DNA from: Macrostomum lignano
Taxonomy: Eukaryota
Assembly: GCA_002269645.1 (NCBI GenBank)
Contig: NIVC01004648.1
Location: 1 to 39,495 of the forward strand
Reading direction: 5' to 3'
Length of the DNA stretch: 39,495 nt
Shown piece after piece: positions 2,493 to 38,544 of the stretch. The position numbers and the translations under genes were made by a program. The notes below the pieces were generated by a model, which saw only the letters and a program-made list of their open reading frames with translations, searched no databases and was not told the origin of the DNA. The first letter of the stretch is position 1. The number at the start of each line of letters is the position of its first letter.

Positions 2493-2778
2493 TCAATTTC
2501 TAGCATTACTGTTTGCTTGCAGCAAGGTACGGCATCGGTTCTGCAGTTTGTTAATCCTCTCAAATACTTTAACAGCTGGGCCCAGTTTCAGGCCGAGACC
2601 TGCGAGCACGTCCATTCGCTTCATCAGCATCAGAGAGGCGCCATCGATCTCTTGATCGACAAATGCCTGAGCAGCCAGAGGGAAGCCTTCGAATAGGAGC
2701 CAGGATTTCACTTGGGCGATGGTCCACTTGCTGGCGTCGAATGGATTCGGGTCGTCTAGAAATACAGGCGACTTCCTG
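2493..2778 (-). CDS. SAMD1: SAMD1-like protein, coding exon 2 (C-terminal SAM domain)
   Basis: Acceptor ctccag|cag| at 2780-2776 is phase-compatible with the phase-2 donor. Reads SRKSPVFLDDPNPFDASKWTIAQVKSWLLFEGFPLAAQAFVDQEIDGASLMLMKRMDVLAGLGLKLGPAVKVFERINKLQ, a SAMD1/SAMD13/Scm-type SAM. Stop TGA at 2495-2493. Confidence 0.9.
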
Positions 2779-2815
2779 CTGGAGTTGGGAGAGACAAATC
2801 AAGCGAATGAAATTA

Positions 2816-3205
2816 GCTTTTTACCATAGAAGTTTGAATTAGAAAACTAGATTTAATGGTCTATCTAGTTGGAAGCTTTTACCATAGACACTGGCTAGTT
2901 AAGGTGGTTTTACCGCTACCAGGCATTGGCTAGCTGGGGTGGAGTTTTACCATAGACACTAGCTGACTAACGTCTAGCTGGGGTGGGATTTTACCATAGA
3001 CACTGGCTGATTAACGTCTAGCTGGGGTGGGGTTTTACCATAGACCACTGGCAGACTAACGACTAGTTGGGGTGGAGGTTTACCATAGACACTGGCTAGT
3101 TAAGGTGATTTTACCATAGACTGGCTAGTTGGGTGGAATTTTACCATAGACACTGGCTGACTAACGTCTAGTTGGGGTGGGGTTTTACCATAGACATTGG
3201 CTGAC
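2816..3205. repeat. Degenerate intronic tandem repeat (ttttaccatagacactggctga...ggggtgg), about 9 copies of 30-45 bp
   Basis: ttaccataga recurs about 9 times inside the SAMD1-like intron. Confidence 0.85.
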
Positions 3206-3283
3206 AAGTCAGAGTCTTTGCAATATAGACTGTTGCATAAATTTAGATTTAGGCCCACGGTTTCTACCAAGCGCGTCACTCAC

Positions 3284-4945
3284 CTATTCACTGATCCGTC
3301 ATCCTCGATCTTCTGACAGGCTGAGCAAATCCACTTGGCCTCGCTAGCCGGCTTCTCCGGTATCTTCGGCCGGTGGCAGCTGACGTGGTAGCCCTTGTCG
3401 CAGGCGTCACAGATAAGCATCAGCTCCGCGTCGCCTGGATCGAGGCAGACGCAGCAGGTCTTGCACTCGGAGCACTGCCAAGGCGACTGGCGGGCTCGAG
3501 AGGCCAGCTCAACTGAGTAGAGCATGCAGCTAGGATGGGCCCGGTGGCTGCAGTCGCGGCAGGTTAGCAACTGCTCAGGGACGCCCATTCGATTAGCTCG
3601 GCCAGAGGACAAGCAAAAATCGCAGAGTTCATCGTCAGACTGCTGCTGATTAAGCTCTTGCTCAATCTCCTGCTCAGAGTCTTCCTGATGTTGCTGCTGC
3701 TGCTGCTGGGAACGCTCTTCCAGAGAAGCAGCAGATGCTTTGGATTGTTTTCGAGTTTTCTCTTTGTTGTGCTTTGACTTGGTCGTAGCCGGCGATTCAC
3801 TTGGTTGACTTTGGCGTCGCTCCTTCTGCTCGGTTGGATTTGGCGATCCGGCGGTCGCCGGCTTCTCAGCGACTACGGCGGAAGCGGCGGCTACTGCTGG
3901 GGATGCTGAGTCCCTGGCAACGCCTTTGACTCGCGAGATGACCACGGTTGGAATTGGTGGTAGGGCCTGCTGCGGTTGCTTAGTGACAGACGAAGGCTGC
4001 GATGTCGGAGAGTGCTCAGCAGACTGAGCCGCTGGCGTGGCCGTAGTGTCTGCCACAGAGACAGACGTGATGCAGTAAGCAGGTGGCGCAGTTTCACTAT
4101 TAGAGGAGCAATTACTTGAGCTGGAACTCGCGGTGGAGGCTGGCTGCCGCTGCTGCTGCTGAGGCAAGCAATGGCCAACTGACAAGTCCAGCGGTTCGCA
4201 CAGGTCCGACTGAGCTGGCTCGCTTGGTCTCGGCCGCTTAGCCTGGGGCGGGTGAAGCTGCTGCGACTGCTGCTGCTTGTTGCTGTTGCTTGTCTGCTGC
4301 TGCTTGTTGTTGCTGCTGCTGCTGCTGCTCTCCTTGCCCTTTTTGAGCGCCTCCTTATCGCGACGCTTCGATCCGTCCGGGTCGAGAGTGTACCGGCCGG
4401 TGGAGACGCGGCACAGTCCGCCAGTGGACGCCTCGCGTTCGAGCGCCATCTCCAGAGTTTCGCCCTGCAGAGGCTCCGCGCCTGGCGCCGAATCCTCTTC
4501 TTCAGACGTCGCCGACGGCAGGCAGCGCAGACGATCGGCCACGTCCTGAACGGTGAAGCCGGAGGCGAGCACGTCGGGCTGATCGCTGGCCAGGCTGCCG
4601 ACTGCGGCCAACAGGCGACGACTGGTGGCGCTGCTGTTCAACACGCTGCTGATGAGGGAGCCGCGGCGCCATTTTGAAGCATTCCGGTAGGACACGGAGC
4701 CTTTGTACTCGACCTTCAGCACCGAGCCGTCGTCAACTAGACGCTCGAGCAGCTGTACAATGGCCTCCCGTTGGAGACCGTGATGCCGCGTCACCATCGA
4801 ACAGATCCGATCAATATCTGGCCGGGCCTTCCGCTCGCGCAGTTTGTCAATGATGGTCAGGATCATTGTGCGGATCGGCTCATCGCCGAGAGCAGCCGCT
4901 GCAGCCGCGGCGGCTGCTGCTGCTGCGGCGGCTTTTTCCGCGGAA

Positions 4946-4981
<36 letters not shown>

Positions 4982-5295
4982 GACGGTGGCGGAGAAGACA
5001 TCGTTGTGGACGTGACAATGGCGGCTGCGTGTCCGGGCAGCTGCTGAGCGGCGGCCAGATTGTCCGGACGCTGTTGAACTAGCCGATCAACCGAGTGTCC
5101 GATGGAGGACTTGACCGGTGCCGGTGCATGACAGATGTTGTTGTTCTCGCCTAGGCTGGCACTGGTATTATTATTAATGGCAGCCTTTGCACCGCCGTGG
5201 TGATGATGGAGCTGATGGTGATAGCTAGCCACCACCTGCTGCGACGACAGGAAGCCAGGCGGGATGGCCGTCTGCACTGGCAGAGCGCGGGCCAT
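3284..5295 (-). CDS. SAMD1: SAMD1-like chromatin protein, coding exon 1 (SAMD1-type winged helix, second WH-like domain, double PHD finger); join(5295..3284,2778..2493), about 765 aa
   Basis: The ORF 3280-5511 contains IRTMILTIIDKLRERKARPDIDRICSMVTRHHG...YKGSVSYRNA, a close match to the SAMD1 winged helix including the RK pair. It also has a tandem PHD (CDFC...HPSC...CSECKTCCVC...CDACDKGYH..C...WICSAC). First ATG in the open frame is at 5295. Donor AG|GTGAGT after 3284, phase 2. The start may lie further upstream: there is an acceptor-like tgtataccag at 5345-5343. Confidence 0.9.
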
Positions 5296-9663: not shown

Positions 9664-10505
9664 GATAATAACCTTAGGCGCCATTGATAACTCGTAGCAA
9701 TATTCGGCGCTATTAATAACATTCGGCGCCATTGATAATAACATTTGACGCCATTGATAATAATATTCGGCGCCATTGATAATAACGTTCGGCGCATTTA
9801 TAACAACATTCGGCGCCATTGATAATAAAATTCGGTCCCATTCATAATAACATTCGGCGCGATTAGATATTCGGCGCCATAAATAGTATTCAGCGCCATT
9901 GATAATAACATTCGGCGCGATTAGATATTCGGCGCTATAAATAGTATTCAGCGCCATTGATAATAACATTCGGCGCGATTAGATATTCGGCACCATTGAT
10001 AATAACATTCGGCGCGATTAGATATTCGGCGCCATAAATAGTATTCAGCGCCATTGATAATAACATTCGGCGCCATTGATAATAACTTGAGGCGCCATTG
10101 ATAACAACCTGAGGCGCCATTGATAACAACCTGAGGCGCCATTGATAACAACCTGAGGCGCCATTGATAACAACCTTAGGCGCCATTGATAACAACCTTA
10201 GGCGCCATTGATAACAACCTGAGGCGCCATTGATAACAACCTGAAGCGCCATTGATAACAACCTGAGGCGCCATTGATAACAACCTGAGGCGATATTGAT
10301 AACCACCTGCGGTGCCATTGATAACAACCTGAGGCGCCATTGATAACAACCTGAGGCGCCATTGATAACAACTTGAGGCGCCATTGATAACAACCTGAGG
10401 CGCCATTGATAACAACCTGAGGCGCCATTGATAACAACCTGAGGCGCCATTGATAATAACCTGAGGCGCCATTGATAACAACTTGAGGCGCCATTGATAA
10501 CAACA
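9664..10505. repeat. 22-bp minisatellite (ggcgccattgataacaacctga), about 35 copies, with a variant sub-block near 9855-10060
   Basis: Direct reading. Confidence 0.95.
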
Positions 10506-11049: not shown

Positions 11050-14000
11050 CTTCAATTGGCTTCGATGGGGGCGCATAGCAAAGGAGAATGAGCTGGAGGA
11101 GGAGAAAGACGAGGGGAAAAAGAGCGAACGAAGGCTTGAAGTTGAGACTGGAAGCGGGCAGGCTCAGAGATTAGCCTCAAGTATTTGGGGTTGATTTCGG
11201 GTGTCCCAGGGGTGCCGTCCGTTATCCCCAAGCCGGACCACACCGCCTCTTGCCCCCGCCCTGGGTCCATCAGCGCAACTAAGCAACCATGCACCTACCT
11301 AACCTTCCCACCCAATTCCGCTCCCCGATTTCTTCCCCAGTTCGCCAATCTCTTTCTCTGCTATCTGCCTTTCCTTCTTGTCATAACGGGTGTCGGACAC
11401 GTTACAGCAGTCGCGCGCTTTCAGTCCAGTCTCCGAGCCGAGCGCGAGGTTCCGTCATCATCATCTCTTTCAAATCCCTTCCTCGTTTTCTGTCCTGTCA
11501 TTTATGTTTCGATTGCGCCCCAAGTCTTTATTTTTTAATGTCCCGTCTCCTCCCCTCCCTCTCTCAAGCTCACAGAAATTAGAAAGCCGAAAGCAGAAAG
11601 AAGAAAGCGGCGGCCTCACAAAGCAGTAACAGGCGCTGCAGCAGCAGCAGCGGAGGTGACGCGAAGCGCAATCAAGAGAGAGAGAGAGAGAGAGAGAGGA
11701 AGGTCGCGCTTCACAACCCGGCTAGCCCAGCCATAGAGAAGGGTTGAGGATGCGTGTGGGCCCCGCAAGGCTGGGTGGGAATCGGGGAAAGGCGGCTAGG
11801 GTTTGGGGTGGCGGATTTAGCCTCTCGGATTCCCGCACCGGCGGCTGCGGCAGCAGACGGGAGGTGACGGGGGAAGGGGGGGTTGGAGCTGCGCGGCGCG
11901 GGCCAAGCAAGCAGGCAGGCAGGCAGGCGGGCAGGCCGTCAGAATTAATGGGCTGATCGAGCAGTTGCGGACGCGGCGGACCCAAGCGAGAGAAAAAAAG
12001 CGAGAGGGACAAGTCGGGGCCGTTGGGGGCGGGGACTGGGATAGGCAGGGCAGGCTGACTGCCTGGCTGGCGGCCGAGGCGAAGGGCCGGGCAGCGGGGC
12101 GGGAATTTGGCGCGCCATCGAGATTAGAGCGAAAGACGGCTTGAGGCTTAGGGGAGGGCAGATTGGGATTCTGGGCCTGGCAGGAGAGCGCAGCGTCTGC
12201 ACCCCCCCCCTGTGCGCCTTATCCACCGACCCGACGGCCACCCACTCCAGATCCCCTTCAACTGCCCCCGGCCCTGAGGGCTCCCACACAAAGCAGCCTC
12301 TCCTCGCGAGTCCCGCCCCACCCAGAAAGATTTTGACGCGACCGCGCATAATTTGCGACTGGCTGACTTTGCGACTGGCAGAGAAAGAGAGAAATGACTT
12401 CTCGAAGCGTCGTTGGAGAACTGAGCGCCAAATTGTCGGTCAAGTCTCATTGGTGGTGATGGAACCCCGTTTCAATTTGACAAGCTCATGGCCTTTTCTC
12501 GCCTTAGCAAATCATTTATTGGTAAATTTCGAACGATTCTCCAGCGAGCCGATCTGTGGTGACGTGTTCAAGTTTAATAGGCTGGCAACGCGCTTCGAGT
12601 GGATTGTTTTGGGGGCATTAATTTAACTTCTGCTTGCACACGGTGGCCTCCGAGTCGCAGAGCAGTGAGGAGGCCTGGAGACGGTGGGGTAGGGGGAAGA
12701 TCAGATCAGGCCCAGCGGGGGATGAGGGAGGATGGGATTGTGAGCGGATCTCCAAGGCCAGTGGGTCGAGTGTCTGCCTGTGTGGCGGGAGGGGTGGCGG
12801 CAGCAGCTGCTGCATGCGGGCTTCCGAGCGGGCGCGGCCGACTCTGCGGGGAGCAGCTGCGAAGCCCCGGCCACCGGCCCGACCTCTCGCAGTCGCTGAA
12901 GCAGCAAAGCATGGCAAAACCGGCAGTGACTGACTGACTGGCTGTAGGGGAAGGGGGCTGGCTAGATGGATTGGCGGCTCGAGTCCGTTGGCCACTCGCT
13001 GCGCAGAAACGAGCGCTCGCGACTGGCGCGCACACACCACAAGCAATGGTTTGCTTTAGCTCTAGCTAATCCCGCAGCCCGGCCGCGCTTCTGGCTCAAT
13101 TCATTCATTCAACCTGTGATGTGGCGAGTGGCGAGCGAGCTAGCATGAGTGTGTGTGTGCGTGTGTGCGCGAGCGAGCGCCTGTCTGGCAGGCAGCCCTG
13201 CTAAGCCCCCACGGCAGACGCAGAAAGAAAGAAGGAAATAAACGGAAGGCAAGGCGGGACGCCGGAGAACAAGAAACGGCCGGAGCCGCGAGCTCTGGAG
13301 AGAGAGAGAGAGGGGATGACGCAGTCCCTCAGTCTGTCCTGCAGCTCCCTGCCCCAGCCTCCGCCTCATCACTAATTTATGGCAGCGGGTCTCAACGCGC
13401 TCAGCGACTCGAACAGAGAGAGAGAGATCTAGAGGGGGAGAGAGAGGGCGGAAACTCAATCAATCCCGCCTCTGCCGCCGCTACTGAAGTCGGCGCGCAG
13501 TCTTCTGACTTCCTCGCTCTCTTTTTCCCCTTTTATTGTTCCCAAATCTTTGCCTGTCTGTTGGTTACTCTGTTTCTGGCAGAGAGAGAGAGAAATGTGT
13601 AAAAGCGATCGGACTTAGCAAAATGCCTAGTGTGAATCGCTCTCACTTGCAATATAGGAGAGGATTGAACGGCCAGAATTTACTCAGAGTAAGGCAAGCC
13701 CCAGGTTAAAGAGGAAAGGAGACACGCAAGCAGCTGCGCTTTGGTTTCGGCCTGCCCAATCTGCTCTCCTTAGTAGCTAAGCTATCCCTTCCTCTTCCGC
13801 ACCAAGTAGCGCGCGCGCGTGGCCGCGGCCGGTCGCATCCCAGCGAGTCTCTGCAGCCTCCTTCCTCATCTAAAACATGCCCCCAATCTGCGCTCCCCCG
13901 AGCGCTTTGTAAATCCCCTCTGCGTCTCAGCTCAGAGGAGAGAAGGCTCGAGGACGAACCCGTTGTTGGGCCAGGAGAAGTCTTCCTCTTCGTTCCCTAT

Positions 14001-14812: not shown

Positions 14813-15386
14813 ACCAGTTCATTGATAGATTGATAACCTCACCAGTTCATTGATAGATTGATAACCTCACCAGTTCATTGATAGATTGATAACCTCACCA
14901 GTTCATTGATAGATTGATAACCTCACCAGTTCATTGATAGATTGATAACCTCACCAGTTCATTGATAAATTGATAACCTCACCAGTTCATTGATAGATTG
15001 ATAACCTCACCAGTTCATTGATAGATTGATAACCTCACCAGTTCATTGATAGATTGATAACCTAACCGGTTCATTAATAGGTTGATAACCTAATCAGTTC
15101 ATTGATAGATTGATAACCTCACCAGTTCATTGATAGATTGATAACCTCACCAGTTCATTGATAGATTTATAACCTAAACAGTTCATTGATAGATTGATAA
15201 CCTAAACAGTTCATTGATAGATTGATAACCTCACCAGTTCATTGATAGATTGATAACCTCACCAGTTCATTGATAGATTTATAACCTAAACAGTTCATTG
15301 ATAGATTTATAACCTAAACAGTTCATTGATAGATTGATAACCTAAACAGTTCATTGATAGATTGATAACCTCATCAGTTCATTGAT
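14813..15386. repeat. 28-bp minisatellite (accagttcattgatagattgataacctc), about 20 copies
   Basis: Direct reading. Confidence 0.97.
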
Positions 15387-15780: not shown

Positions 15781-16314
15781 CGCCACTGCCAGCTCACACC
15801 TGAGCCCTCTGTGGCGCCACTGCCAGCCCACACCTGTGCTTTCCTGTGGCGCCACTGCCAGCCCACACCTGTGCTTTCCTGTGGCGCCACTGCCAGCTCA
15901 CACCTGAGCCCTCTGTGGCGCCACTGCCAGCCCACACCTGAGCTTTCCTGTGGCGCCACTGCCAGCTCACACCTGAGCCCTCTGTGGCGCCACTGCCAGC
16001 CCACACCTGAGCTTTCCTGTGGCGCCACTGCCAGCCCACACCTGTGCCCTCTGTAGCGCCACTGCCAGCCCACACCTGTGCCCTCTGTGGCGCCACTGCC
16101 AGCCCACACCTGAGCCCTCTGTGGCGCCACTGCCAGCCCACACCTGAGCCCTCTGTGGCGCCACTGCCAGCCCACACCTGAGCCCTCTGTGGCGCCACTG
16201 CCAGACCACACCTGTGCCCTCTGTGGCGCCACTGCCAGCCCACACCTGTGCCCTCTGTGGCGCCACTGCCAGCCCACACCTGAGCCCTCTGTGGCGCCAC
16301 TGCCAGCCCACCTG
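15781..16314. repeat. 34-bp minisatellite (cgccactgccagcccacacctgagccctctgtgg), about 16 copies
   Basis: Direct reading. Each junction forms the palindrome GTGGCGCCAC. There are no spacers, so it is not CRISPR. Confidence 0.97.
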
Positions 16315-16865
16315 CCTCTAAGCTAAAATCTGAGAGCATTAGCTTGCAGATAAGATCAAATCTAATTAACGCACAGCCGCGCACCTGATACAAGCCATCT
16401 GTCCCAGGCTCCAACTGGGAATTATGGTACCACCCCCAACACTCCTAACCCTTCACACTTTTTAGCTCGGAAGCCAGACAAAAAGCCAGACGGAACCAGC
16501 AGCACAGATTTAATTTCACACACAACCGCTGCGTCCCACAAGGAAACCGCGGAAACCAAAAACCTGGAGATTTAAACTATTCCGGAAACCCCTATTTTTG
16601 AGACAGGAGCAGGCCTAGTGGCTGATATGGTGTGGCTGTTTCATAATACCTAAACATCGCTTAAAAGCCTCAAACATCCAGTTTCATAACACCCAGGTAA
16701 GATGCAAAGAAGAGATTTGGTCAATTGCAAAGAAAGCATTGCAGACGGGACACATTGAACTGTTTATTGCTGGTTCAGTCTTATAATGCTTTTACAACTG
16801 AAGAAGCAAAGGACGCCAGTTCGCGTTTGACCCCTGCTTCGACTGTTTTTCCTCATACGCTCATA

Positions 16866-16939
16866 TCACAAGAACGGATTGTGATTCGACAGCTGCGGAG
16901 GTGCCGGCTGCGGCGACGCAATGAACGGATTGTTGGAAG
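16866..16939 (-). CDS. EPN: Epsin, last coding exon (two NPF motifs); not in the ORF track
   Basis: Acceptor aatttcag|, phase 1. Reads (A)SNNPFIASPQPAPPQLSNHNPFL*, the typical epsin NPFL C-terminus. An AATAAA follows on the minus strand at 16768-16763. Confidence 0.85.
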
Positions 16940-17049: not shown

Positions 17050-17193
17050 GATTAGATAGTTAGTTGGTAAATTAGTTAGTAAATTAGTAAACTAGTTAGT
17101 TACTTAGTTAGTTCATTAGTCAATTAATTAGTTAGTTATTTAGTTTGTCAGTCAGTTAGTTAGTCAGTTATTTAGTTAGTTAGTTAGTTAGTC

Positions 17194-17232
<39 letters not shown>

Positions 17233-17272
17233 CAGTTAGTTAGTTAGTTAGTTAGTTAATTAGTTAGTTAGC

Positions 17273-17303
<31 letters not shown>

Positions 17304-17312
17304 CTAGTTAGC

Positions 17313-17355
<43 letters not shown>

Positions 17356-17356
17356 C

Positions 17357-17423
<67 letters not shown>

Positions 17424-17468
17424 CTAGTTAGTTAGTTAGCTAGTTAGCTAGTTAGTTAGTTAGTTAGC

Positions 17469-17503
<35 letters not shown>

Positions 17504-17560
17504 CTAGTTAGTTAGTTAGCTAGTTAGTTAGTTAGCTAGTTAGCTAGTTAGTTAGTTAGC

Positions 17561-17591
<31 letters not shown>

Positions 17592-17796
17592 CTAGTTAGT
17601 TAGTTAGCTAGTTAGTTAGCTAGTTAGTTAGTTAGCTAGCTAGTTAGTTAGTTAGTTAGTTAGTTAGCTAGTTAGTTAGTTAGTTAGCTAGTTAGTTAGT
17701 TAGCTAGTTAGCTAGTTAGTTAGTTAGCTAGTTAGTTAGTTAGTTAGTTAGTTAGCTAGTTAGTTAGTTAGTTAGCTAGCTAGTTAGTTAGTTAGC

Positions 17797-17831
<35 letters not shown>

Positions 17832-17948
17832 CTAGTTAGTTAGTTAGCTAGTTAGTTAGTTAGTTAGTTAGCTAGTTAGTTAGTTAGCTAGTTAGTTAGT
17901 TAGCTAGCTAGTTAGTTAGTTAGTTAGTTAGCTAGTTAGTTAGTTAGC

Positions 17949-17987
<39 letters not shown>

Positions 17988-17988
17988 C

Positions 17989-18055
<67 letters not shown>

Positions 18056-18104
18056 CTAGCTAGTTAGTTAGTTAGTTAGCTAGCTAGTTAGATAGCTAGC
18101 TAGC
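17050..18104. repeat. (TTAG)n microsatellite with CTAG variants, about 1 kb, in epsin intron 3
   Basis: Direct reading. Confidence 0.98.
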
Positions 18105-18325: not shown

Positions 18326-18908
18326 TGCAGGTGAAAAACGATGGGCCGGGGGGGGGGGGGCTTGGCGAAATGTTTGACAGCGGCGGCGGGGCTCGAGGGG
18401 AAATGATGAACTGGGATGGAGGGATGATAGAATGAAAAAACAGCGCGGGACCGAATCGAGCCCTTGTTGGATTGGGGGAGCAAAATCCTGACAGGCTCGA
18501 CCCGTGTGGCCAAGGGAAAAGTAGATAGGGACTGGGGACGCGCGCGGGATATTTCCCTCTGCCTCCTCCCCGCCGCCCAAGACTCGCACAGCGAGTTGAG
18601 CCGGTCTGGTCATTGATCAAATTGATCTCCCCGGGATAGGCGGTCGAGAGAGAAGAGTCGGGGATCGATGCTGGCTAACTTTTTTAGTCCGAATCTGGTT
18701 TGGTAGGCTCGGCATCAGAGCAGAATTTCTCAGTCAGCCAGTTTGACCATTAAAAAGTCTGGACCGCTGTACAACGATCCTGTATCCGTGCGGTTCCGTG
18801 TGGTCTGCGCGCTCAGGCGTCAGCGGAATGAGCATGACTGCTTGCCTCCTAGCTGACTGCTGGTGTACTGACGCCTTGATTGCGTGCGTCAGTGCTCACA
18901 GCACCGAA

Positions 18909-18932
18909 ACTAACTTACTAACTGACTAACTG

Positions 18933-18983
<51 letters not shown>

Positions 18984-18984
18984 G

Positions 18985-19031
<47 letters not shown>

Positions 19032-19044
19032 GACTAACTAACTG

Positions 19045-19089
<45 letters not shown>

Positions 19090-19100
19090 TTAACTCACTG

Positions 19101-19171
<71 letters not shown>

Positions 19172-19172
19172 G

Positions 19173-19205
<33 letters not shown>

Positions 19206-19631
19206 TTAACTCACTGACTAACTAACTAACTAACTAATTAACTCACTAACTAACTAACTAACTAACTAACTGACGAACTAACTGACTAACTAACTAACTT
19301 AAATAACTAACTGACTATTTAACTAACTAACTAACTAACTAACTGACTAACTAACTAACTAACTAACTGACTAACTAACTAACTAACTGACGAACTAACT
19401 GACTAACTAACTTACTAACTGACTAACTAACTAACTTAAATAACTAACTGACTATTTAACTAACTAACTAACTAACTAACTAACTGACGAACTAACTGAC
19501 TAACTAACTTACTAACTGACTAACTAACTAACTTAAATAACTAACTGACTATTTAACTAACTAACTAACTAAGTAACTAACTGACTAACTAACTAACTAA
19601 CTAACTGACTAACTAACTAACTAACTAACTG

Positions 19632-19702
<71 letters not shown>

Positions 19703-19759
19703 TAACTAACTAACTGACTAACTAACTAACTAACTAACTAACTTAACTAACTAACTGAT

Positions 19760-19794
<35 letters not shown>

Positions 19795-19875
19795 TTAACT
19801 AACAAACAAACAAACAAACAAACAAACAAACAAATTAATTAACGAACTAACCAACTGACTAACTAAATAACTAAA
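18909..19875. repeat. (CTAA)n microsatellite with CTGA variants, about 1 kb; reverse complement of the 17050-18104 array
   Basis: Direct reading. Confidence 0.98.
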
Positions 19876-20368: not shown

Positions 20369-21368
20369 ACTGGCGCCACTTTGATGGCACTAGCGCCACT
20401 TTGATGGCACTAGCGCCATTTTGATGACACTGGCGCCACTTTGATGGCACTAGCGCCACTTTGATGACACTGGAGCCACTTTGATGCACTAGCGCCCCTT
20501 TTAAGACACTAGCGCCACTTTCGAAGACACTAGTGCCATTTTGAAAGACACAAGCGCCGTTTTTGAAAACACTAGCGCCACTTTTAAGACACTAGCGCCA
20601 TTTTTGAAGACACTAGCGCCATTTTTGAAGACACTAGCGCCATTTTTGAAGACACTAGCGCCATTTTTGAAGACACTAGCGCCATTTTTAAGACATTAGC
20701 GCCATTTTTGAAGACATTAGCACCATTTTTGAAGACACTAGCGCCATTTTTGAAGACACTAGCGCCATTTTTGAAGACATTAGCGCCATTTTTGAAGACA
20801 TTAGCACCATTTTTGAAAACACTAGCGCCATTTTTTAAGACATTAGCGCCATTTTTGAAGACATTAGCACCATTTTTGAAAACACTAGCGCCATTTTTGA
20901 AGACACTAGCGCCATTTTTAAAGACATTAGCGCCATTTTTGAAGACATTAGCACCATTTTTGAAGACATTAGCGCCATTTTTGAAGACACTAGCGCCATT
21001 TTTGAAGACACTAGCGCCATTTTTGAAGACACTAGCGCCATTTTTAAGACATTAGCGCCATTTTTGAAGACACTAGCGCCATTTTTGAAGACACTAGCGC
21101 CATTTTTAAGACACTAGCGCCATTTTTGAAGACACTAGCGCCATTTTTAAGACATTAGCGCCATTTTTGAAGACATTAGCACCATTTTTGAAGACATTAG
21201 CGCCATTTTTTTAAGACACTAGCGCCATTTTTGAAGACACTAGCGCCATTTTTAAGACATTAGCGCCATTTTTGAAGACATTAGCACCATTTCTAAGAAA
21301 CTAGCGCCATTTTTAAAGACATTAGCGCCATTTTTAAAGACATTAGCGCCATTTTTGAAAACACTAGC
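20369..21368. repeat. 20-21-bp minisatellite (gacactagcgccatttttgaa), about 48 copies, in epsin intron 3
   Basis: Direct reading. It explains the KTLAPFL ORF. Confidence 0.97.
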
Positions 21369-22400: not shown

Positions 22401-22843
22401 TTAGGTGGATCTGTAGCGTACAGTGAATAAAATCCAGTGAAACGGACAAAACTGACACGATACAGACAATAAAATCTTCAATAAAACCTAATTGAAGATG
22501 CAAAGCGGTTACTGTATTTTGAATATTTTAAAATCTGAAACTTTTTAAATGTCTACAGATGTTAAAATTTGAAAAATGTCAGAACAAAGCAGAGTGTTTA
22601 GTGCACTATACACAAGGCAGAGGACTTACTACTCCTGTAGAATTGAGCGGCGGCGGCATGCGAAGTGGCGCTAAAGTCTAGAAGAATTAAATTCAAATTT
22701 TTACTGTGCAAAAATATTCTATCGCGCAAATATTAAATAATAGTACTATCAGTAGAGAGGCCATAAAACAATAAAACCATTGGAATACAAAAACTGTAAA
22801 AAATATAATCATAGACAATAGACAAGTTACAATAACTTCGCAC

Positions 22844-23189
22844 CTCTTCTTCCAGTCTGCTTGCCTCAAGTACGCTCTGTAGTCGAAGCTCCTCGCGTTG
22901 CTGCTCTTCCTGGCGTAAATTGTACTCTTCGCGCGATACTTGCAAAGCTATTTCTAATTCTAAGTCGGCATCGATTGCGTCATCTGGAGCGGCAGGCAGA
23001 GGCTGCTTTGATTCCGCCTGCGGTGGCTGCTGCGACTGTCGCGGCGGTGAGTACGGAATATCTCGACTGTCGCCTCGCATTCTATTTTTAGCTTTGATAG
23101 CGCTGGCCCGTTCGGATTTTAATCGGTCGGGATCTTCTAAGAGGGCTATTAGCTTTGTAGCTTTGTCGCGAATGCTCTGAGCCGGATCT
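22844..23189 (-). CDS. EPN: Epsin, coding exon 2 (end of ENTH, two UIM-like motifs)
   Basis: Acceptor ctttctag|. Reads RDPAQSIRDKATKLIALLEDPDRLKSER (ENTH end), then LELEIALQVSREE and LRLQSVLEASRLE (UIM-like). Donor GAG|GTGCGA, phase 0. Confidence 0.9.
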
Positions 23190-23269
23190 CTAGAAAGGAC
23201 GGACGAATGAAGAAAAGTTGAGTAGGTGGTTTGGCTGATGTAAAATTGACGTCTTATGGCTAGGCCGGT

Positions 23270-24560
23270 GTAGGATAGAGGGTTGCGGACTGGAGCAAGG
23301 GAAGGAGTGAGGTGGCTGCAAGATTGAGGGGTTGCAGACTGGGGCAGGGAAGGAGTGAGGTGGCTGCAGGATTGAAGGGTTGCAGACTGGGGCAGGGAAG
23401 GAGTGAGGTGGCTGCAGGATTGAGGGGTTGCGGACTGGGGCAAGGGAAGGAGTGAGGTGGCTGCAGGATTGAGGGGTTGCAGACTGGGGCAGGGAAGGAG
23501 TGAGGTGGCTGCAGGATTGAGGGATTGCGGACTGGGGCAAGGGAAGGAGTGAGGTGGCTGCAGGATTGAGGGGTTGCAGACTGGGGCAGGGAAGGAGTGA
23601 GTGGCTGCAGGATTGAGGGGTTGCGGACTGGGGCAAGGGAAGGAGTGAGGTGGCTGCAGGATTGAAGGGTTGCAGACTGGGGCAGGGAAGGAGTGAGGTG
23701 GCTGCAGGATTGAGGGGTTGCGGACTGGGGCAAGGGAAGGAGTGAGGTGGCTGCAGGATTGAGGGGTTGCAGACTGGGGCAGGGAAGGAGTGAGGTGGCT
23801 GCAGGATTGAGGGATTGCGGACTGGGGCAAGGGAAGGAGTGAGGTGGCTGCAGGATTGAGGGGTTGCAGACTGGGGCAGGGAAGGAGTGAGTGGCTGCAG
23901 GATTGAGGGGTTGCGGACTGGGGCAAGGGAAGGAGTGAGGTGGCTGCAGGATTGAAGGGTTGCAGACTGGGGCAGGGAAGGAGTGAGGTGGCTGCAGGAT
24001 TGAGGGGTTGCAGACTGGGGCAGGGAAGGAGTGAGGTGGCTGCAGGATTGAGGGGTTGCGGACTGGGGCAAGGGAAGGAGTGAGGTGGCTGCAGGATTGA
24101 GGGGTTGCAGACTGGGGCAGGGAAGGAGTGAGGTGGCTGCAGGATTGAGGGGTTGCGGACTGGGGCAAGGGAAGGAGTGAGGTGGCTGCAGGATTGAGGG
24201 GTTGTGGATTGGGCCAAGGGAAGGAGTGAGGTGGCTGCAGGATTGAGGGGTTGCAGACTGGGGCAGGGAAGGAATGAGGTGGCTGCAGGATTGAGGGCTT
24301 GTGGACTGGCCCAAGGGAAGGAGTGAGGTGGCTGCAGGATGGGGTTGCGGACTGGGGTAAGGGAGTGAGGTGTCGGTAAGATTGAGGGGTTGCGGACTGG
24401 GGTAAGGGAAGGAGTGAGGTGGCTGCAGGAGGGGTTGAGGACTGGGGTAAGGGAGTGAGGTGGCTGCAGAATTGGGGGGTTGCGGACTGTGGCAGGGAAG
24501 TTGTGAGGTGTCTGCAGGATTGAGGGGTTGCGGCCTGGGGCAGAGAATGGGGTGGCTGCA
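23270..24560. repeat. 48/49-bp G-rich minisatellite (gggaaggagtgaggtggctgcaggattgaggggttgcagactggggca) with a 290-bp higher-order repeat, epsin intron 1
   Basis: The variant attgaagggt occurs at 23371, 23661 and 23951. It explains the three long repetitive ORFs. Confidence 0.97.
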
Positions 24561-30316: not shown

Positions 30317-30759
30317 TTATTTAAAATTCAGCGCCCTGCTGGGCACGCTCTGATAAATAACGCTTATCGCCACACCGCTGATGGCCAAGAACAGCCAGAA
30401 CAGAATTCTGTCAGCCGATCTGGCCAGAGCAACCCACGCTTCTGGGCTGCTGCACAGGCAGCTGCTCAATTCTTCCTTATGCAGTCCTCCTCGCGGCTTG
30501 CCTCTGGCAACGCTATCCCCAGCCATCTCTGCTTCATCGCTGCCCAGTTCTCTAACAACTGCCGGCTGTTGCTCCTTGCGTCTTGGGCGTCGCCGGTAGC
30601 GACAGCTTTGCTGACAGTGAAATCTGGACACGTAGCGGCGGAGACAGTCGGGCACTCGACCAGTTGAGCGGGTGAACTTTCTCACGTGAATATTGGTCAC
30701 TGCGACGGCCATCAGGAGAGCCAGAGATACCATTAGCATTGTGGAGCCGAAGAGTAGAC
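30317..30759 (-). CDS. nAChR alpha subunit, last exon (M3, short intracellular loop, M4)
   Basis: caaacag|, phase 1. Reads GLLFGSTMLMVSLALLMAVAVTNIHVR (M3)...EAWVALARSADRILFWLFLAISGVAISVIY (M4). Stop TAA at 30319-30317. AATAAA on the minus strand at 30238-30233. The four visible exons total 1140 nt, in frame. Confidence 0.9.
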
Positions 30760-30924: not shown

Positions 30925-32457
30925 TCTTTTCAGCTCTCTTCTCTCAGCTCTCTTCTCTCAGCTCTCTTCTCTCCTCTCTCCCCTCTCCCTATCCTCTCTT
31001 CCCCTCTCCTCTCTTCTCTCTTTTGTCCCCTGTCATCTCTTCTCTCCACTCTCCCCTCTCCTCTCTTTTTTCTCCTATCTTCTCGCTTCTCTTCTCTCCT
31101 CTCTCCCCTCTCCTCTCCCCGTCTCATCTCTTCTATCTTCTCTTCTCTCCTCTCTCCACTCTCCTCTCTCCTCTCTCCCTCTCCTCTCCCCCTCTCATCT
31201 CTTCTCTCTTCTCTTCTCTCCTCTCTCCCTTCTCCTCTCCCCGTCTCATCTCTTCTATCTTCTCTTCTCTCCTCTCTCCACTCTCCTCTCTCCACTCTCC
31301 CCTCTCCTCTCTTTTCTCTCCTATCTTCTCTCTTTTCTTCTCTCCTCTCTCCCTCTCCTCTCCCCCTCTCATCTCTTCTCTCTTCTCTTCTCTCCTCTCT
31401 CCCTTCTCCTCTCCCCGTCTCATCTCTTCTATCTTCTCTTCTCTCCTCTCTCCACTCTCCTCTCTCCACTCTCCCCTCTCCTCTCTTCTCTTCTCTCCTC
31501 TCTCCCCTCTCCTCTCCCCGTCTCATCTCTTCTATCTTCTCTTCTCTCCTCTCTCCACTCTCCTCTCTCCACTCTCCCCTCTCCTCTCTTTTCTCTCCTA
31601 TCTTCTCTCTTTTCTTCTCTCCTCTCTCCCCTCTCCTCTCCCCCTCTCATCTCTTCTCTCTTCTCTTCTCTCCTCTCTCCCTTCTCCTCTCCCCGTCTCA
31701 TCTCTTCTATCTTCTCTTCTCTCCTCTCTCCCCTCTCCTCTCCCCCCTCTCATCTCTTCTCTCTTCTCTTCTCTCCTCTCTCCCTTCTCCTCTCCCCGTC
31801 TCATCTCTTCTATCTTCTCTTCTCTCCTCTCTCCACTCTCCTCTCTTTTCTCTCCTCTCTTCTATCTTCTCTTCTCTCCTCTCTCCCCTCTCCTCTCCCC
31901 CCTCTCATCTCTTCTATCTTCTCTTCTCTCCTCGCTCCCTCTCCTCTCTCCACTCTCCCCTCCTCTCTTTTCTCTCATCTCTTCTCTCTTCTCTTCTCTC
32001 CTCTCTCCCCTCTCCTCTCCCCCCTCTCATCTCTTCTATCTTCTCTTCTCTCCTCTCTCCACTCTCCTCTCTCCACTCTCCCCTCTCCTCTCTTTTCTCT
32101 CCTATCTTCTCTCTTTTCTTCTCTCCTCTCTCCCCTCTCCTCTCCCCCTCTCATCTCTTCTCTCTTCTCTTCTCTCCTCTCTCCCTACTCCTCTCCCCGT
32201 CTCATCTCTTCTATCTTCTCTTCTCTCCTCTCTCCCCTCTCCTCTCCCCCTCTCATCTCTTCTCTCTTCTCTTCTCTCCTCTCTCCCTTCTCCTCTCCCC
32301 GTCTCATCTCTTCTATCTTCTCTTCTCTCCTCTCTCCACTCTCCTCTCTCCACTCTCCCCTCTCCTCTCTTTTCTCTCCTATCTTCTCTCTTCTCTTCTC
32401 TCCTCTCTCCCTCTCCTCTCTTTTCTCTCATCTCTTCTCTCTTCTCTCCCCTCTCCA
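30925..32457. repeat. About 1.5-kb polypyrimidine (CT-rich) compound satellite in the last nAChR intron
   Basis: Almost only C/T on the plus strand, built from ctctc/cttct/catct modules in recurring longer blocks. Confidence 0.97.
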
Positions 32458-32979: not shown

Positions 32980-34200
32980 ATTCAAATCCCATCCTAATCC
33001 CAAATATCTAGATCCCATCCTAGACATAAAAATCCCATCCTGAATATCCAGATCCCATCCTAAATATCCAGATCCCATTCTAAGCATCCAGATCCCATCC
33101 TAAATATCCAGATCCCATCCTAAGCATCCAGATCCCATCCTAGGCATTCAGATCCCATCCTAAGCATCCAGATCCCATCCTAAATATCCAGATCCCATCC
33201 TAAACATTCAACTCCCATCCTAGGCATTCAGATCCCACCCTAAGCATGTAGATCCCATCCTAAGCATTCAGATCCCATCCTAAACAGTTAGATCCAATCC
33301 TAAACAGTTAGATCCCACCCTAAATATTCTAATACCATCCTAAATATCCAGATCCCATCCTAAACATACAAATCCCATCCTAAGCATCCAGATCCCATCC
33401 CAAGCATTCAACTCCCATCCTAGGCATTCAGATCCCACCCTAAGCATGCAGATCCCATCCTAAGCATTCAGATCCCATCCTAAACAGTTAGATCCAATCC
33501 TAAACAGTTAGATCCCACCCTAAATATTCTAATACCATCCTAAATATCCAGATCCCATCCTAAACATACAAATCCCATCCTAAGCATCCAGATCCCATCC
33601 CAAGCATTCAACTCCCATCCTAGGCATTCAGATCCCACCCTAAGCATGCAGATCCCATCCTAAGCATTCAGATCCCATCCTAAACAGTTAGATCCAATCC
33701 TAAACAGTTAGATCCCACCCTAAATATTCTAATACCATCCTAAATATCCAGATCCCATCCTAAACATACAAATCCCATCCTAAGCATCCAGATCCCATCC
33801 CAAGCATTCAACTCCCATCCTAGGCATTCGGATCCCATCCTAAACAGTTAGATCCCATCCTAAACAGTTAGATCCCATCCTAAACAGTTAGATCCCATCC
33901 TAAACAGTTAGATCCCATCCTAAACAGTTAGATCCCATCCTAAACAGTTAGATCCCATCCTAAACAGTTAGATCCCATCCTAAACAGTTAGATCCCATCC
34001 TAAACAGTTAGATCCCATCCTAAACAGTTAGATCCCACCCTAAATATTCTAATACTATCCTAAATATCCAGATCCCATCCTAAATATCCAAATCTCACCC
34101 TAAACATCCAAATCCCATCATTAGCATCAAATCCCATCCTAAACATCCAAATCCCCTTGAAAATATCCAAACACATCCTTAAGCATTTAAATCCCATTCT
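32980..34200. repeat. 20-bp minisatellite (gatcccatcctaaacagtta) with a 200-bp higher-order repeat
   Basis: The variant taaatattctaatacc occurs at 33321, 33521 and 33721. A homogeneous run lies at 33840-34040. Confidence 0.96.
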
Positions 34201-34267
34201 ACAAGGGTTAAGCACTAAAATCCCCCAGCAATTCGCCCAGCCTCATCCCCAGCATCCCCTTACTCAC

Positions 34268-34809
34268 CCACAAGCGGAATGGCATCGGGTGTAGGCGGCA
34301 GAGTGTCGCCAACAATCATGAGGAACACCACCAGAGCCAGCAGGATGGTCAGCTCCAAGTTGACTTTCTCGCCAGACTCGGCGGGCAAGAAGAAGCCGAG
34401 CCAACTGGTAAGGTACATCAGGGCGCAGGGGAACACCAGGTTCAACACGTAGAACAGTGATCGTCGAGTCATGTCGATGGTGATGGTGATGTCCGGCCAG
34501 GGCTCACTGCAGCAGGCGTACACCCCGGTAGAGCGGGAATAGGCTATGCTGGTCACATTCCACTCTTGACTGGCCTCCGAGAAGTAGTTTCTGTTGGCGT
34601 CCACTGATTCGTCGTGCCACAGGTCCACCTGGTACAGGTGATAAGTCCAGCTGATGAAGGTGACATTGCAGCGCTGCGAGTCGAATGGGAAATACTTGAC
34701 AGCCAAGTTGCAGGTGACCTTCACCAGGGCTGGGAACATCCACAGCACGGAGCCGTTGTGCTGAACAACAATGTTTGTGCTGGCGAAGCGTTTGTTACTG
34801 TCGTCTGCG
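34268..34809 (-). CDS. nAChR alpha subunit, 542-nt exon (Cys-loop, loops B and C with vicinal CC, M1, M2)
   Basis: cccattgcag|, phase 2. Contains SADD...CNLAVKYFPFDSQRC (13-residue Cys loop), SWTY, YACCSEPWPD, RRSLFYVLNLVFPC (M1), LPAESGEKV (M2). Donor G|GTGAGT, phase 1. The motifs most resemble alpha9/alpha10. Confidence 0.95.
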
Positions 34810-34826: not shown

Positions 34827-36906
34827 GGATCAAGGACCACTGTAGCATAACAGGATCAAGGACCACTGTAGCATAACAGGATCAAGGACCACTGTAGCAT
34901 AACAGGATCAAGAACCACTGTAGTATAACAGGATCAAGGACCACTGTAGTATAACAGGATCAAGGACCACTGTAGCATAACAGGATCAAGGACCACTGTA
35001 GCATAACAGGATCAAGGACCACTGTAGCATAACAGGATCAAGAACCACTGTAGCATAACAGGATCAAGGACCACTGTAGCATAACAGGATCAAGAACCAC
35101 TGTAGCATAACAGGATCAAGGACCACTGTAGTATAACAGGATCAAGGACCACTGTAGCATAACAGGATCAAGGACCACTGTAGCATAACAGGATCAAGAA
35201 CCACTGTAGTATAACAGGATCAAGGACCACTGTAGTATAACAGGATCAAGGACCACTGTAGCATAACAGGATCAAGGACCACTGTAGCATAACAGGATCA
35301 AGGACCACTGTAGCATAACAGGATCAAGAACCACTGTAGCATAACAGGATCAAGGACCACTGTAGCATAACAGGATCAAGAACCACTGTAGCATAACAGG
35401 ATCAAGGACCACTGTAGTATAACAGGATCAAGGACCACTGTAGCATAACAGGATCAAGGACCACTGTAGCATAACAGGATCAAGAACCACTGTAGTATAA
35501 CAGGATCAAGGACCACTGTAGTATAACAGGATCAAGGACCACTGTAGTATAACAGGATCAAGGACCACTGTAGCATAACAGGATCAAGGACCACTGTAGC
35601 ATAACAGGATCAAGACCACTGTAGCATAACAGGATCAAGGACCACTGTAGCATAACAGGATCAAGAACCACTGTAGCATAACAGGATCAAGGACCACTGT
35701 AGTATAACAGGATCAAGGACCACTGTAGCATAACAGGATCAAGGACCACTGTAGTATAACAGGATCAAGGACCACTGTAGTATAACAGGATCAAGGACCA
35801 CTGTAGCATAACAGGATCAAGGACCACTGTAGTATAACAGGATCAAGACCACTGTAGCATAACAGGATCAAGGACCACTGTAGCATAACAGGATCACGGA
35901 CCACTGTAGCATAACAGGATCAAGGACCACTGTAGCATAACAGGATCAAGGACCACTGTAGCATAACAGGATCAAGGACCGCTGTAGTATAGCAGGATCA
36001 AGGACCACTGTAGCATAACAGGATCAAGGACCGCTGTAGTATAGCAGGATCAAGGACCACTGTAGCATAACAGGATCAAGGACCACTGTAGCATAACAGG
36101 ATCAAGGACCACTGTAGCATAACAGGATCAAGGACCACTGTAGCATAACAGGATCAAGGGCCGCTGTAGTATAACAGGATCAAGGACCACTGTAGTATAA
36201 CAGGATCAAGGACCACTGTAGCATAACAGGATCAAGGACCACTGTAGTATAACAGGATCAAGGACCACTGTAGTATAACAGGATCAAGGACCACTGTAGT
36301 ATAACAGGATCAAGGACCACCGTAGCATAACAGGATCAAGGACCACTGTAGTATAACAGGATCAAGGACCACTGTAGTATAACAGGATCAAGGACCACTG
36401 TAGTATAACAGGATCAAGGACCACTGTAGTATAACAGAATCAAGAACCACTGTAGTATAACAGGATCAAGGACCACTGTAGCATAACAGGATCAAGGACC
36501 ACTGTAGTATAACAGGATCAAGGACCACTGTAGTATAACAGGATCAAGGACCGCTGTAGCATAACAGGATCAAGGACCACTGTAGCATAACAGGATCAAG
36601 GACCACTGTAGCATAACAGGATCAAGGACCACTGTAGTATAACAGGATCAAGAACCACTGTAGTATAACAGGATCAAGGACCACTGTAGTATAACAGGAT
36701 CAAGGACCACTGTAGCATAACAGGATCAAGGACCGCTGTAGTATAACAGGATCAAGGACCACTGTAGTATAACAGGATCAAGGACCGCTGTAGTATAACA
36801 GGATCAAGGACCACTGTAGTATAACAGGATCAAGGACCGCTGTAGTATAACAGGATCAAGGACCACTGTAGTATAACAGGATCAAGGACCACTGTAGTAT
36901 ACAGGA
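34827..36906 (+). repeat. 26-bp minisatellite (ggatcaaggaccactgtagcataaca), about 80 copies
   Basis: Direct reading. Confidence 0.98.
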
Positions 36907-37995: not shown

Positions 37996-38338
<343 letters not shown>

Positions 38339-38343
38339 CGCAC

Positions 38344-38453
38344 CTGTTGGAGATGACAATATCAGGAGTCCATATCGAGCCAGATGGGATATGTATGGAC
38401 TGGGTGCCATTGAACTCGTCCGGCAGCCAAATCAGGTGTTCGTCTGTCCACCG
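38344..38453 (-). CDS. nAChR alpha subunit, 110-nt exon (loop A)
   Basis: ttttcag|CGG TGG...AAC AG|GTGCGT. Reads RWTDEHLIWLPDEFNGTQSIHIPSGSIWTPDIVISN. Confidence 0.9.
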
Positions 38454-38544
38454 CTGAAAATAAGCGTGTACAAAATCGGTAAAGTACTCGCGGGCGGTTG
38501 CAATAAAACATGTGCCAGAAAAGTGATTCGAAATCATCAATTAC

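Follow-up and report, generated by a model that had tools for sequence, protein, structure and literature searches.

A two-exon gene for a four-domain protein

The stretch of DNA analysed here, called the window below, is the 39,495-nt contig NIVC01004648.1 of the flatworm Macrostomum lignano (assembly GCA_002269645.1, positions 1 to 39,495). Its minus strand holds an intact gene, confirmed here, with four domains: two winged helices (WH1 and WH2), a double PHD finger (DPF) and a C-terminal SAM domain. The gene is very probably a flatworm orthologue of SAMD1, also named atherin. Its parts are as follows.

5295-3284, minus strand: coding exon 1, 2012 nt, a continuous open reading frame for amino acids 1-670 plus 2 nt
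3283-2779, minus strand: intron, 505 nt, GT...AG
2778-2493, minus strand: coding exon 2, 286 nt, amino acids 671-765 and stop (stop codon at 2495-2493)
5295-4891, minus strand: N-terminal low-complexity extension, amino acids 1-135, with His, Gln and Ala runs
4866-4681, minus strand: WH1, amino acids 144-205, a SAMD1-type winged helix
4632-4384, minus strand: WH2, amino acids 222-304, the second winged helix
4383-3631, minus strand: linker between WH2 and DPF, amino acids 305-555, low-complexity and presumably disordered
3630-3310, minus strand: DPF, amino acids 556-662, with 16 of 16 zinc ligands
2729-2541, minus strand: SAM, amino acids 688-750, within exon 2

Exon 1 lies in a 743-codon open frame of the minus strand (5511-3280), the first ATG of which is at 5295 (sequence context AACAAATGG). 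The donor after position 3284 reads as the consensus AATAG/GTGAGT, with GTGAGT starting at 3283, and the TGA within it limits read-through past exon 1 to two codons. The acceptor before 2778 is pyrimidine-rich (...TCTCTCCCAACTCCAG/CAGG), with ...CTCCAG ending at 2780-2779. Chiefly a 44-bp and 29-30-bp tandem repeat (2930-3158) makes up the intron, and the 5' flank of the gene is GC-rich. The joined exons amount to 2298 nt, or 765 codons and a stop, with the frame intact, and we infer their splicing from the canonical sites and the in-frame junction. An earlier note on this DNA had proposed a two-exon gene for a 765-amino-acid protein; the same exons and the same length were recovered here, and its domain coordinates lie within a few codons of those measured. 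The true start codon is uncertain, because orthologues begin 5-40 amino acids ahead of WH1, and the alternative start in this gene is M99 at nt 5001. The N-terminal extension (amino acids 1-135) has no counterpart in alignments of relatives. Ser, Gln and Pro are abundant in the linker, which also has basic patches; it has no family match in Pfam and differs in length and sequence from one orthologue to another.

WH1 and SAM are of the SAMD1 type

WH1 matches the Pfam family SAMD1_WH (PF21524) with an E-value of 2.1e-27, and its best match among solved structures is human SAMD1 (6lui, 1.9e-18), with KAT6A at 2.8e-12. The WH1 profile of the family gives 132 bits with the SAMD1 WH and 59 bits with the KAT6A WH, so that the domain belongs to the SAMD1 subtype and not to the KAT6 subtype; Enok-type sequences are likewise distinct from it. 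The modelled WH1 superimposes on the SAMD1 WH-DNA crystal structure 6lui with a root-mean-square deviation of 0.8 Å and 55% identity (Foldseek). In human SAMD1 the WH contacts DNA through R43, R45, K46, R48, R56, Y87, K88, S92 and R94 (Stielow et al., PMC8115922). In the 6lui alignment the flatworm protein has the same residue at each of these nine sites, from R153, R155, K156 and R158 onward, with R155/K156 forming the RK pair, and the net charge of the domain is +5. The SAMD1-like WH1 with its RK pair, proposed in the earlier note from the sequence, is thus supported by the Pfam match, the 6lui match and the contact residues.

Searched against solved structures, the SAM domain matched SAMD1 best (6luk, 1.1e-15), followed by PHC3 (4e-8); the lower matches, PHC3, L3MBTL3, Ph and Scm, range from 4e-8 to 3.5e-5. 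The flatworm SAM shares five residues of the hydrophobic SAM-SAM interface of SAMD1 (I488, M496, L502, L505 and L509) and has valine in place of L513, in keeping with the SAMD1-like SAM that had been noticed before. PHC/Ph, Scm, L3MBTL3 and SFMBT proteins, which supply the next-best matches (4e-8 to 3.5e-5), also end in a SAM of the polymerising type, but their readers are MBT or FCS domains rather than winged helices and a DPF, and the flatworm SAM lies much nearer to that of SAMD1 (1e-15).

The DPF is complete

Pfam places two PHD fingers at amino acids 556-660, and phmmer aligned the DPF end to end with those of KAT6A (1.4e-26), KAT6B (1.9e-23), DPF3 (3e-23) and PHF10 (4e-21), as well as with DPF2. 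Its zinc-ligand Cys and His positions are invariant across the family, and the DPF ranks with the most conserved parts of the family. The E-values of the WH1, DPF and SAM matches exclude chance similarity as their source. The earlier note had called the DPF KAT6-like. It is a genuine, complete DPF, but bit scores hardly separate KAT6 from BAF45 proteins as its nearest kin: a profile of 12 family sequences gave 113 bits for KAT6A, 107 for DPF3, 105 for KAT6B, 103 for DPF2 and 93 for PHF10, and a gap of only 6 bits between KAT6A and DPF3 does not allow the domain to be called specifically KAT6-like. In this respect the protein resembles DPF1-3 and PHF10 of the BAF and PBAF complexes (PMC8538644, PMC7800603). 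The 'CDFC' motif of PHD1, with its Asp-Phe pair, is present in the flatworm DPF and also in KAT6A chain 5b78. Wild-type DPF3b carries this motif too. The other domains of the BAF/PBAF proteins are Requiem/C2H2 and SAY, unlike the WH1, WH2 and SAM of the flatworm protein.

The residues of the KAT6A DPF that bind histone H3 and form the pocket for acylated K14 have been described (Dreveny et al., PMC3902925), and we mapped the flatworm DPF onto that list through the KAT6A alignment. The Asp pair for H3R2 is conserved (D282 to D630, D285 to D633), as are the A1 pocket (W305 to W655, P301 to P649), the K14ac-pocket residues F211 (F560) and W257 (W606), and L279 (L627), A275 (A623) and E261 (E610). 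Five positions differ from KAT6A: L242 is M591, S210 is D559, N235 is H584, I260 is S609 and M300 is K648.

The WH2 segment models as a winged helix

An AlphaFold2 model of amino acids 135-312, built from a 97-sequence alignment, has a mean predicted local distance difference test (pLDDT) score of 88. It contains WH1, made of three helices and a hairpin; a connecting helix leads to WH2, which has the order helix-helix-helix-strand-strand (helices 222-238, 249-258 and 278-290; strands 294-298 and 301-304). Outside an acidic disordered insert at amino acids 259-277, the WH2 block has pLDDT values of 79-96. In the model it has the make-up of the linker-histone (H15) fold, three helices and then a beta-hairpin wing. 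WH1 accounted for most matches of a fold search with the two-domain model, and the top matches of a WH2-only model were all winged helices (KAT6A WH, H1, ORC, MukF, Z-alpha and H5). Because these matches are generic, with E > 0.1, structure alone does not link WH2 to H15 or to KAT6.

Profile comparisons point further. The family WH2 profile aligned over the whole domain with the WH2 of insect Enok/KAT6 (hhalign probability 89.7%, E 1.8e-6), while four cross comparisons of WH2 with WH1, run as controls, gave 1-5%. A PDB profile search with WH2 returned only a weak match to HP1BP3 (H15, E 0.094); among the 97 relatives, Pfam Linker_histone matches the WH2 segment in 25 and Pfam SAMD1_SHD (PF24971) is matched by seven. 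On the model and the profiles we accept the window WH2 as a predicted winged helix homologous to the WH2 of KAT6 and Enok, as the WH2-like segment of the earlier note had implied. It carries a net charge of -7 (the family median is -2) and lacks the basic DNA-binding surface of the H15 class. DNA binding by WH2 is not assumed, given this charge against +5 for WH1; the WH2 of MORF binds DNA and the nucleosome dyad, whereas that of the flatworm is acidic.

The architecture is widespread among animals

With a profile built from four full-length relatives, a search of 1.84 billion cluster representatives gave 339 matches below 1e-30. Single-sequence searches gave few matches: nine with DPF and SAM, and seven with the full-length protein in a word-indexed search, where low-complexity words may have taken up much of the candidate list. 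The best 150 of the 339 profile matches were classified with purpose-built domain hidden Markov models, and all counts below refer to them.

WH1-WH2-DPF-SAM: 65 representatives
WH1-DPF-SAM: 7 representatives
DPF-SAM, probably fragments: 23 representatives
WH1-WH2-SAM: 17 representatives
WH1-SAM: 20 representatives

A MYST domain was found in none of the 65 four-domain representatives, and 37 representatives are vertebrate-SAMD1-like without a DPF. When the sequences are ordered by the identity of their WH1 and SAM to teleost SAMD1, none at or above 0.68 has a DPF and nearly all at or below 0.65 have one. The four-domain proteins come from Platyhelminthes, Mollusca, Annelida, Nemertea, Brachiopoda, Tardigrada, Arthropoda and Echinodermata. 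DPF-bearing sequences include those of Macrostomum lignano, Elysia, Nucella, Batillaria, Solemya, Owenia, Oppiella, a copepod and several insect orders, together with proteins labelled 'KAT6B-like' (Tubulanus and the sea star Patiria), 'histone acetyltransferase KAT6B' (Lingula), 'KAT6A-like' (Paramacrobiotus) and 'Atherin' (Nymphon). The Argonauta protein has the order WH1-DPF-SAM, and a tunicate isoform has at least DPF and SAM; the sequences from Priapulus, ticks, an oyster and Paralvinella are fragments or split gene models. The DPF is missing in Lampris, Sardina, Arapaima, Callorhinchus (atherin), Stegostoma and Lampetra. Domain calls for nine named relatives agree in Pfam, with MOZ_SAS in none of them, and insects have separate Enok-type proteins with a clearly different WH1.

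The names given to these proteins are often those of enzymes. P0141, P0147, P0148, P0249, P0139 and P0152 are all WH1-WH2-DPF-SAM proteins without MYST, yet are called 'histone acetyltransferase KAT6A/KAT6B(-like)' by NCBI or 'Histone acetyltransferase' by UniRef, which appears to be propagated mis-annotation. As a separate observation, the 90% cluster of the Patiria protein P0148 includes 45-amino-acid Streptomyces 'trp operon leader peptides' and looks like a clustering artefact.

The occurrence of the four-domain order in protostomes and in a sea star indicates that the architecture is older than the protostome-deuterostome split. Of the two origins that the earlier note had offered, ancestral or chimeric, the first is favoured by this distribution and by the absence of the DPF from all vertebrate-type sequences. 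The second fails because the family is old and widespread, with the same four domains across eight phyla, and is not a local fusion. The note's caution about novelty was well placed, as the architecture is already widely predicted in databases under the names 'histone acetyltransferase KAT6B-like', 'atherin' and 'uncharacterized'. On these sequences the loss of the DPF is placed on the vertebrate stem, with the proviso that the gene model of the lamprey may lack parts.

The same data bear on the idea that the window gene arose by a recent, lineage-specific fusion of a SAMD1-like with a KAT6-like gene, or by an error of assembly. The protein does join features that the literature assigns to two families (PMC8115922, PMC9881136). 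However, the four-domain order occurs in the eight phyla, fragments with WH1 and WH2 or with DPF and SAM occur in Priapulida and Tunicata, and in the window everything from WH1 to the DPF lies within one uninterrupted exon, all of which makes such a fusion or artefact extremely improbable.

A KAT6- or Enok-type acetyltransferase gene, with MYST exons beyond the window or overlooked and with the SAM exon belonging to a different gene, is also very improbable. Such a reading could appeal to the likeness with KAT6A/KAT6B (MOZ/MORF) and Drosophila Enok (PMC9881136, PMC9908889): the WH1-WH2-DPF order and the atypical CpG-reading subtype of WH1 are common to them, the WH2 domains are homologous by profile, the DPFs align over their full length, KAT6A is the top solved match of the DPF, and several relatives carry the name 'histone acetyltransferase KAT6B(-like)' in NCBI or UniRef. 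KAT6 proteins, however, continue into MYST and long C-terminal regions, whereas the flatworm protein ends in SAM, and its WH1 falls within the SAMD1 subgroup (132 against 59 bits; 1.9e-18 against 2.8e-12). The frame passes from the DPF through canonical splice sites to a SAMD1-type SAM and a stop codon. Pfam gave no MYST (MOZ_SAS) match in the protein, and tblastn with two MYST regions gave nothing below E 1 in the 39.5-kb window. MYST and MOZ_SAS are likewise lacking from the 65 full-length and the nine named relatives, and the Enok-type proteins of insects are separate, with a distinct WH1. The order WH1-WH2-DPF-SAM without an acetyltransferase, as first noticed from the letters, thus stands for each domain.

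Vertebrate SAMD1 retains a diverged WH2

The earlier note had started from the premise that vertebrate SAMD1 consists only of WH and SAM. This premise is incomplete, as teleost and chimaera SAMD1 carry the Pfam domain SAMD1_SHD (Lampris, E 1e-31) in the region matched by the WH2 hidden Markov model, and SAMD1_SHD is homologous to WH2. The invertebrate WH2 profile aligned with the vertebrate SAMD1_SHD region at hhalign 98.6% (E 1.3e-15), while the vertebrate region alone reached only 29% with Enok WH2. Since the direct vertebrate-Enok link is this low, the invertebrate sequences are the bridge that identifies SHD as a diverged WH2.

Vertebrate SAMD1 (PMC8115922, PMC11969672; 6LUI, 6LUJ/6LUK) is a repressor that binds CpG islands and has L3MBTL3 and KDM1A as partners. 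It resembles the flatworm protein in the DNA contacts of WH1, the ML/EH interface of SAM, a probable WH2 equivalent in SAMD1_SHD, a long disordered middle and the lack of an enzyme domain. It differs in that the flatworm protein has a complete DPF between WH2 and SAM. A single helix of ~14 residues separates WH1 from WH2 in the flatworm protein, as against a gap of ~200 residues in Lampris SAMD1, and the Pro/Ala-rich region of mammalian SAMD1 is not found in the flatworm.

SAMD1 has been termed vertebrate-specific (PMC8115922), with a published definition of a WH, a disordered region and a SAM, from which the window protein departs by its DPF and by its flatworm origin. Since its WH1, its WH2 and its SAM each group with SAMD1, we read this definition as too narrow. 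Work on KAT6 relates its WH1 to SAMD1 without discussing a SAM-bearing relative (PMC9881136, PMC9908889), and reviews of DPFs count six mammalian DPF proteins (PMC8538644). A non-exhaustive search of the literature on invertebrate SAMD1 and atherin-like proteins found no description of the WH1-WH2-DPF-SAM order.

A related locus and the copy status of the gene

The nearest named relatives of the protein are M. lignano proteins, ~70% identical over the domains. At one other M. lignano locus, L001, the DPF and SAM exons are 75-78% identical to those of the window at the nucleotide level, and the SAM exon is 82% identical in amino acids with a ratio of nonsynonymous to synonymous substitution rates (dN/dS) of 0.11. 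For the gene as a whole dN/dS is 0.22, with 0.11-0.19 in DPF and SAM and dS ~1. The intron between DPF and SAM is common to both loci, and a tblastx comparison with L001 showed no conservation of flanking genes in the window. The window gene may be a diverged paralogue of the L001 gene.

Three introns of L001, one within WH1, one between WH1 and WH2 and one within the DPF, have no counterpart in the window. Together with the 135-amino-acid low-complexity N-terminal extension and its long homopolymer runs, their absence could suggest that the window copy is a partly processed, non-functional duplicate of a multi-exon gene. Yet the frame of 765 codons is intact, all zinc ligands and DNA-contact residues are kept, one intron remains and has good splice signals, the gene is preceded by a GC-rich 5' flank, and dN/dS is 0.11-0.19 in DPF and SAM at dS >= 1. 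We regard a dead duplicate as improbable, and the dN/dS values, 0.22 overall and lower in DPF and SAM, argue for a functional gene that has lost introns rather than for a dead retrocopy.

Two further observations concern relatives of the window gene. The nearest relative in WH1-WH2, P0003 (ENA, 1281 amino acids), is a read-through product with ~600 amino acids of unrelated N-terminal sequence, and its resemblance ends after 'DATGW', where SAM should start, as if frame-shifted. A 20-bp satellite (AGATCCCATCCTAAACATTC) at 33010-34155 of the window has ~69% identical copies beside the L001 gene, at 12222-13424 and 16561-16875.

Neighbouring sequence

The rest of the window holds ion-channel exons, an epsin-like exon and many repeats.

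38031-38540, 34260-34748 and 30317-30739, minus strand: exons of a Cys-loop ligand-gated ion channel, with Neur_chan_LBD (1e-19) and Neur_chan_memb
~22733-23190, minus strand: epsin-like exon, with an ENTH end (weak, E 0.007) followed by ubiquitin-interacting-motif-like sequence
17052-18103 and 18908-19874: (TTAG)n and (AACT)n microsatellite arrays, ~1 kb each
1261-1833: 21-bp minisatellite
9714-10505: 22/44-bp minisatellite
14813-15386: 28-bp minisatellite
15781-16311: 34-bp minisatellite
20369-21368: 21-bp minisatellite
23272-24547: 48-bp minisatellite
30934-32456: CT-rich minisatellite
34827-36906: 26-bp minisatellite, 80 copies

The ion-channel exons include the YACC motif typical of nicotinic alpha subunits, and their introns are filled with satellite sequence. 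The epsin-like exon continues directly into the 48-bp array, which is open in three frames. The two microsatellite arrays are mutually reverse-complementary and therefore flank ~800 bp of unique sequence as an inverted pair, across which the GC skew changes from +0.66 to -0.64. Minisatellites are abundant throughout (39 TRF rows), and many of the arrays yield long spurious open reading frames.

A proposed chromatin reader and its significance

We hold with considerable confidence that the locus is a flatworm SAMD1 (atherin) orthologue with the apparently ancestral bilaterian organisation WH1-WH2-linker-DPF-SAM, that its product is most likely a non-catalytic multivalent chromatin reader or scaffold, and that vertebrate SAMD1 is the same family minus the DPF. 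Gene structure, domain homology, conservation of contact residues, purifying selection and taxonomic spread are established by comparing sequences; binding specificities, polymerisation and a repressive output are what we infer. In such a protein, the end of helix 1 of WH1 (R155/K156) would enter the major groove at an unmethylated CpG while the beta-hairpin (Tyr and Lys) would touch the adjacent minor groove, in the manner of human SAMD1. The DPF would dock the N terminus of H3, with the Asp pair receiving R2 and a partly conserved pocket receiving acylated K14. Head-to-tail self-association of SAM could raise avidity and recruit other SAM-domain repressors. WH2, linker-histone-like but acidic here, would probably be a structural or protein-contact module rather than a DNA binder.

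It is also possible, although unlikely, that the gene is real but that WH2 and DPF serve protein contacts or auto-inhibition, leaving the SAMD1 function to WH1 and SAM alone. The charge of WH2 (-7, family median -2), the three substituted residues of the K14ac pocket and the fact that vertebrates manage without a DPF would fit this arrangement, whereas the conserved Asp pair for H3R2, the Trp and Pro of the A1 pocket, the Phe and Trp of the K14 pocket and the place of the DPF among the best-conserved parts of the family speak for a reader.

Several points weigh against the multivalent reader as we propose it. The junction of exons 1 and 2 and the start codon are predicted from genomic letters alone, and the gene has two coding exons where L001 (4001-12158) has five, so that a partly processed copy is conceivable. 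Generic Pfam SAM models at amino acids 688-750 score under their gathering cut-offs. The window WH2 matches neither Linker_histone nor SAMD1_SHD at E 10 in Pfam, its isolated model gives no fold match with E < 0.1, and its assignment depends on family profiles and the model. Three residues of the K14-acyl pocket differ from KAT6A, so that the preference for acyl-lysine may differ as well, and if the host lacks 5-methylcytosine, an 'unmethylated CpG reader' may be a mere binder of CpG motifs.

How the SAMD1 and KAT6 families are related is a further question. We lean slightly towards the view that they are ancient paralogues built on a shared cassette (a CpG-reading WH1, an H15-like WH2 and a DPF that reads the H3 tail), with the output being a repressive SAM scaffold in one and a MYST activator in the other, and with the DPF later deleted from vertebrate SAMD1. 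The argument for a shared cassette comes from the conserved WH1-WH2-DPF order and not from the sequence of the DPF.

Taken by itself, the locus is unremarkable: a conserved member of a form of SAMD1 that is widespread, visible in databases and apparently undescribed. On this evidence SAMD1 would be at least bilaterian in age, hence not vertebrate-specific, and would originally have had a reader of the H3 tail; a seventh DPF family, absent from vertebrates, would stand beside the six mammalian DPF proteins. Neither point was found in the literature searched. The 'small helical domain' of vertebrates would be a degenerate form of the second winged helix that it has in common with KAT6, and the labelling of MYST-less proteins as 'histone acetyltransferase KAT6B-like' is flagged as a systematic annotation error. 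If the cassette is indeed shared, two opposing regulators would read the same CpG and H3 signature in most animals. A testable idea is that SAMD1 and KAT6 are rivals for shared chromatin sites or divide such sites between them. Tractable models for this question would be found among invertebrates kept in the laboratory, Macrostomum being one.

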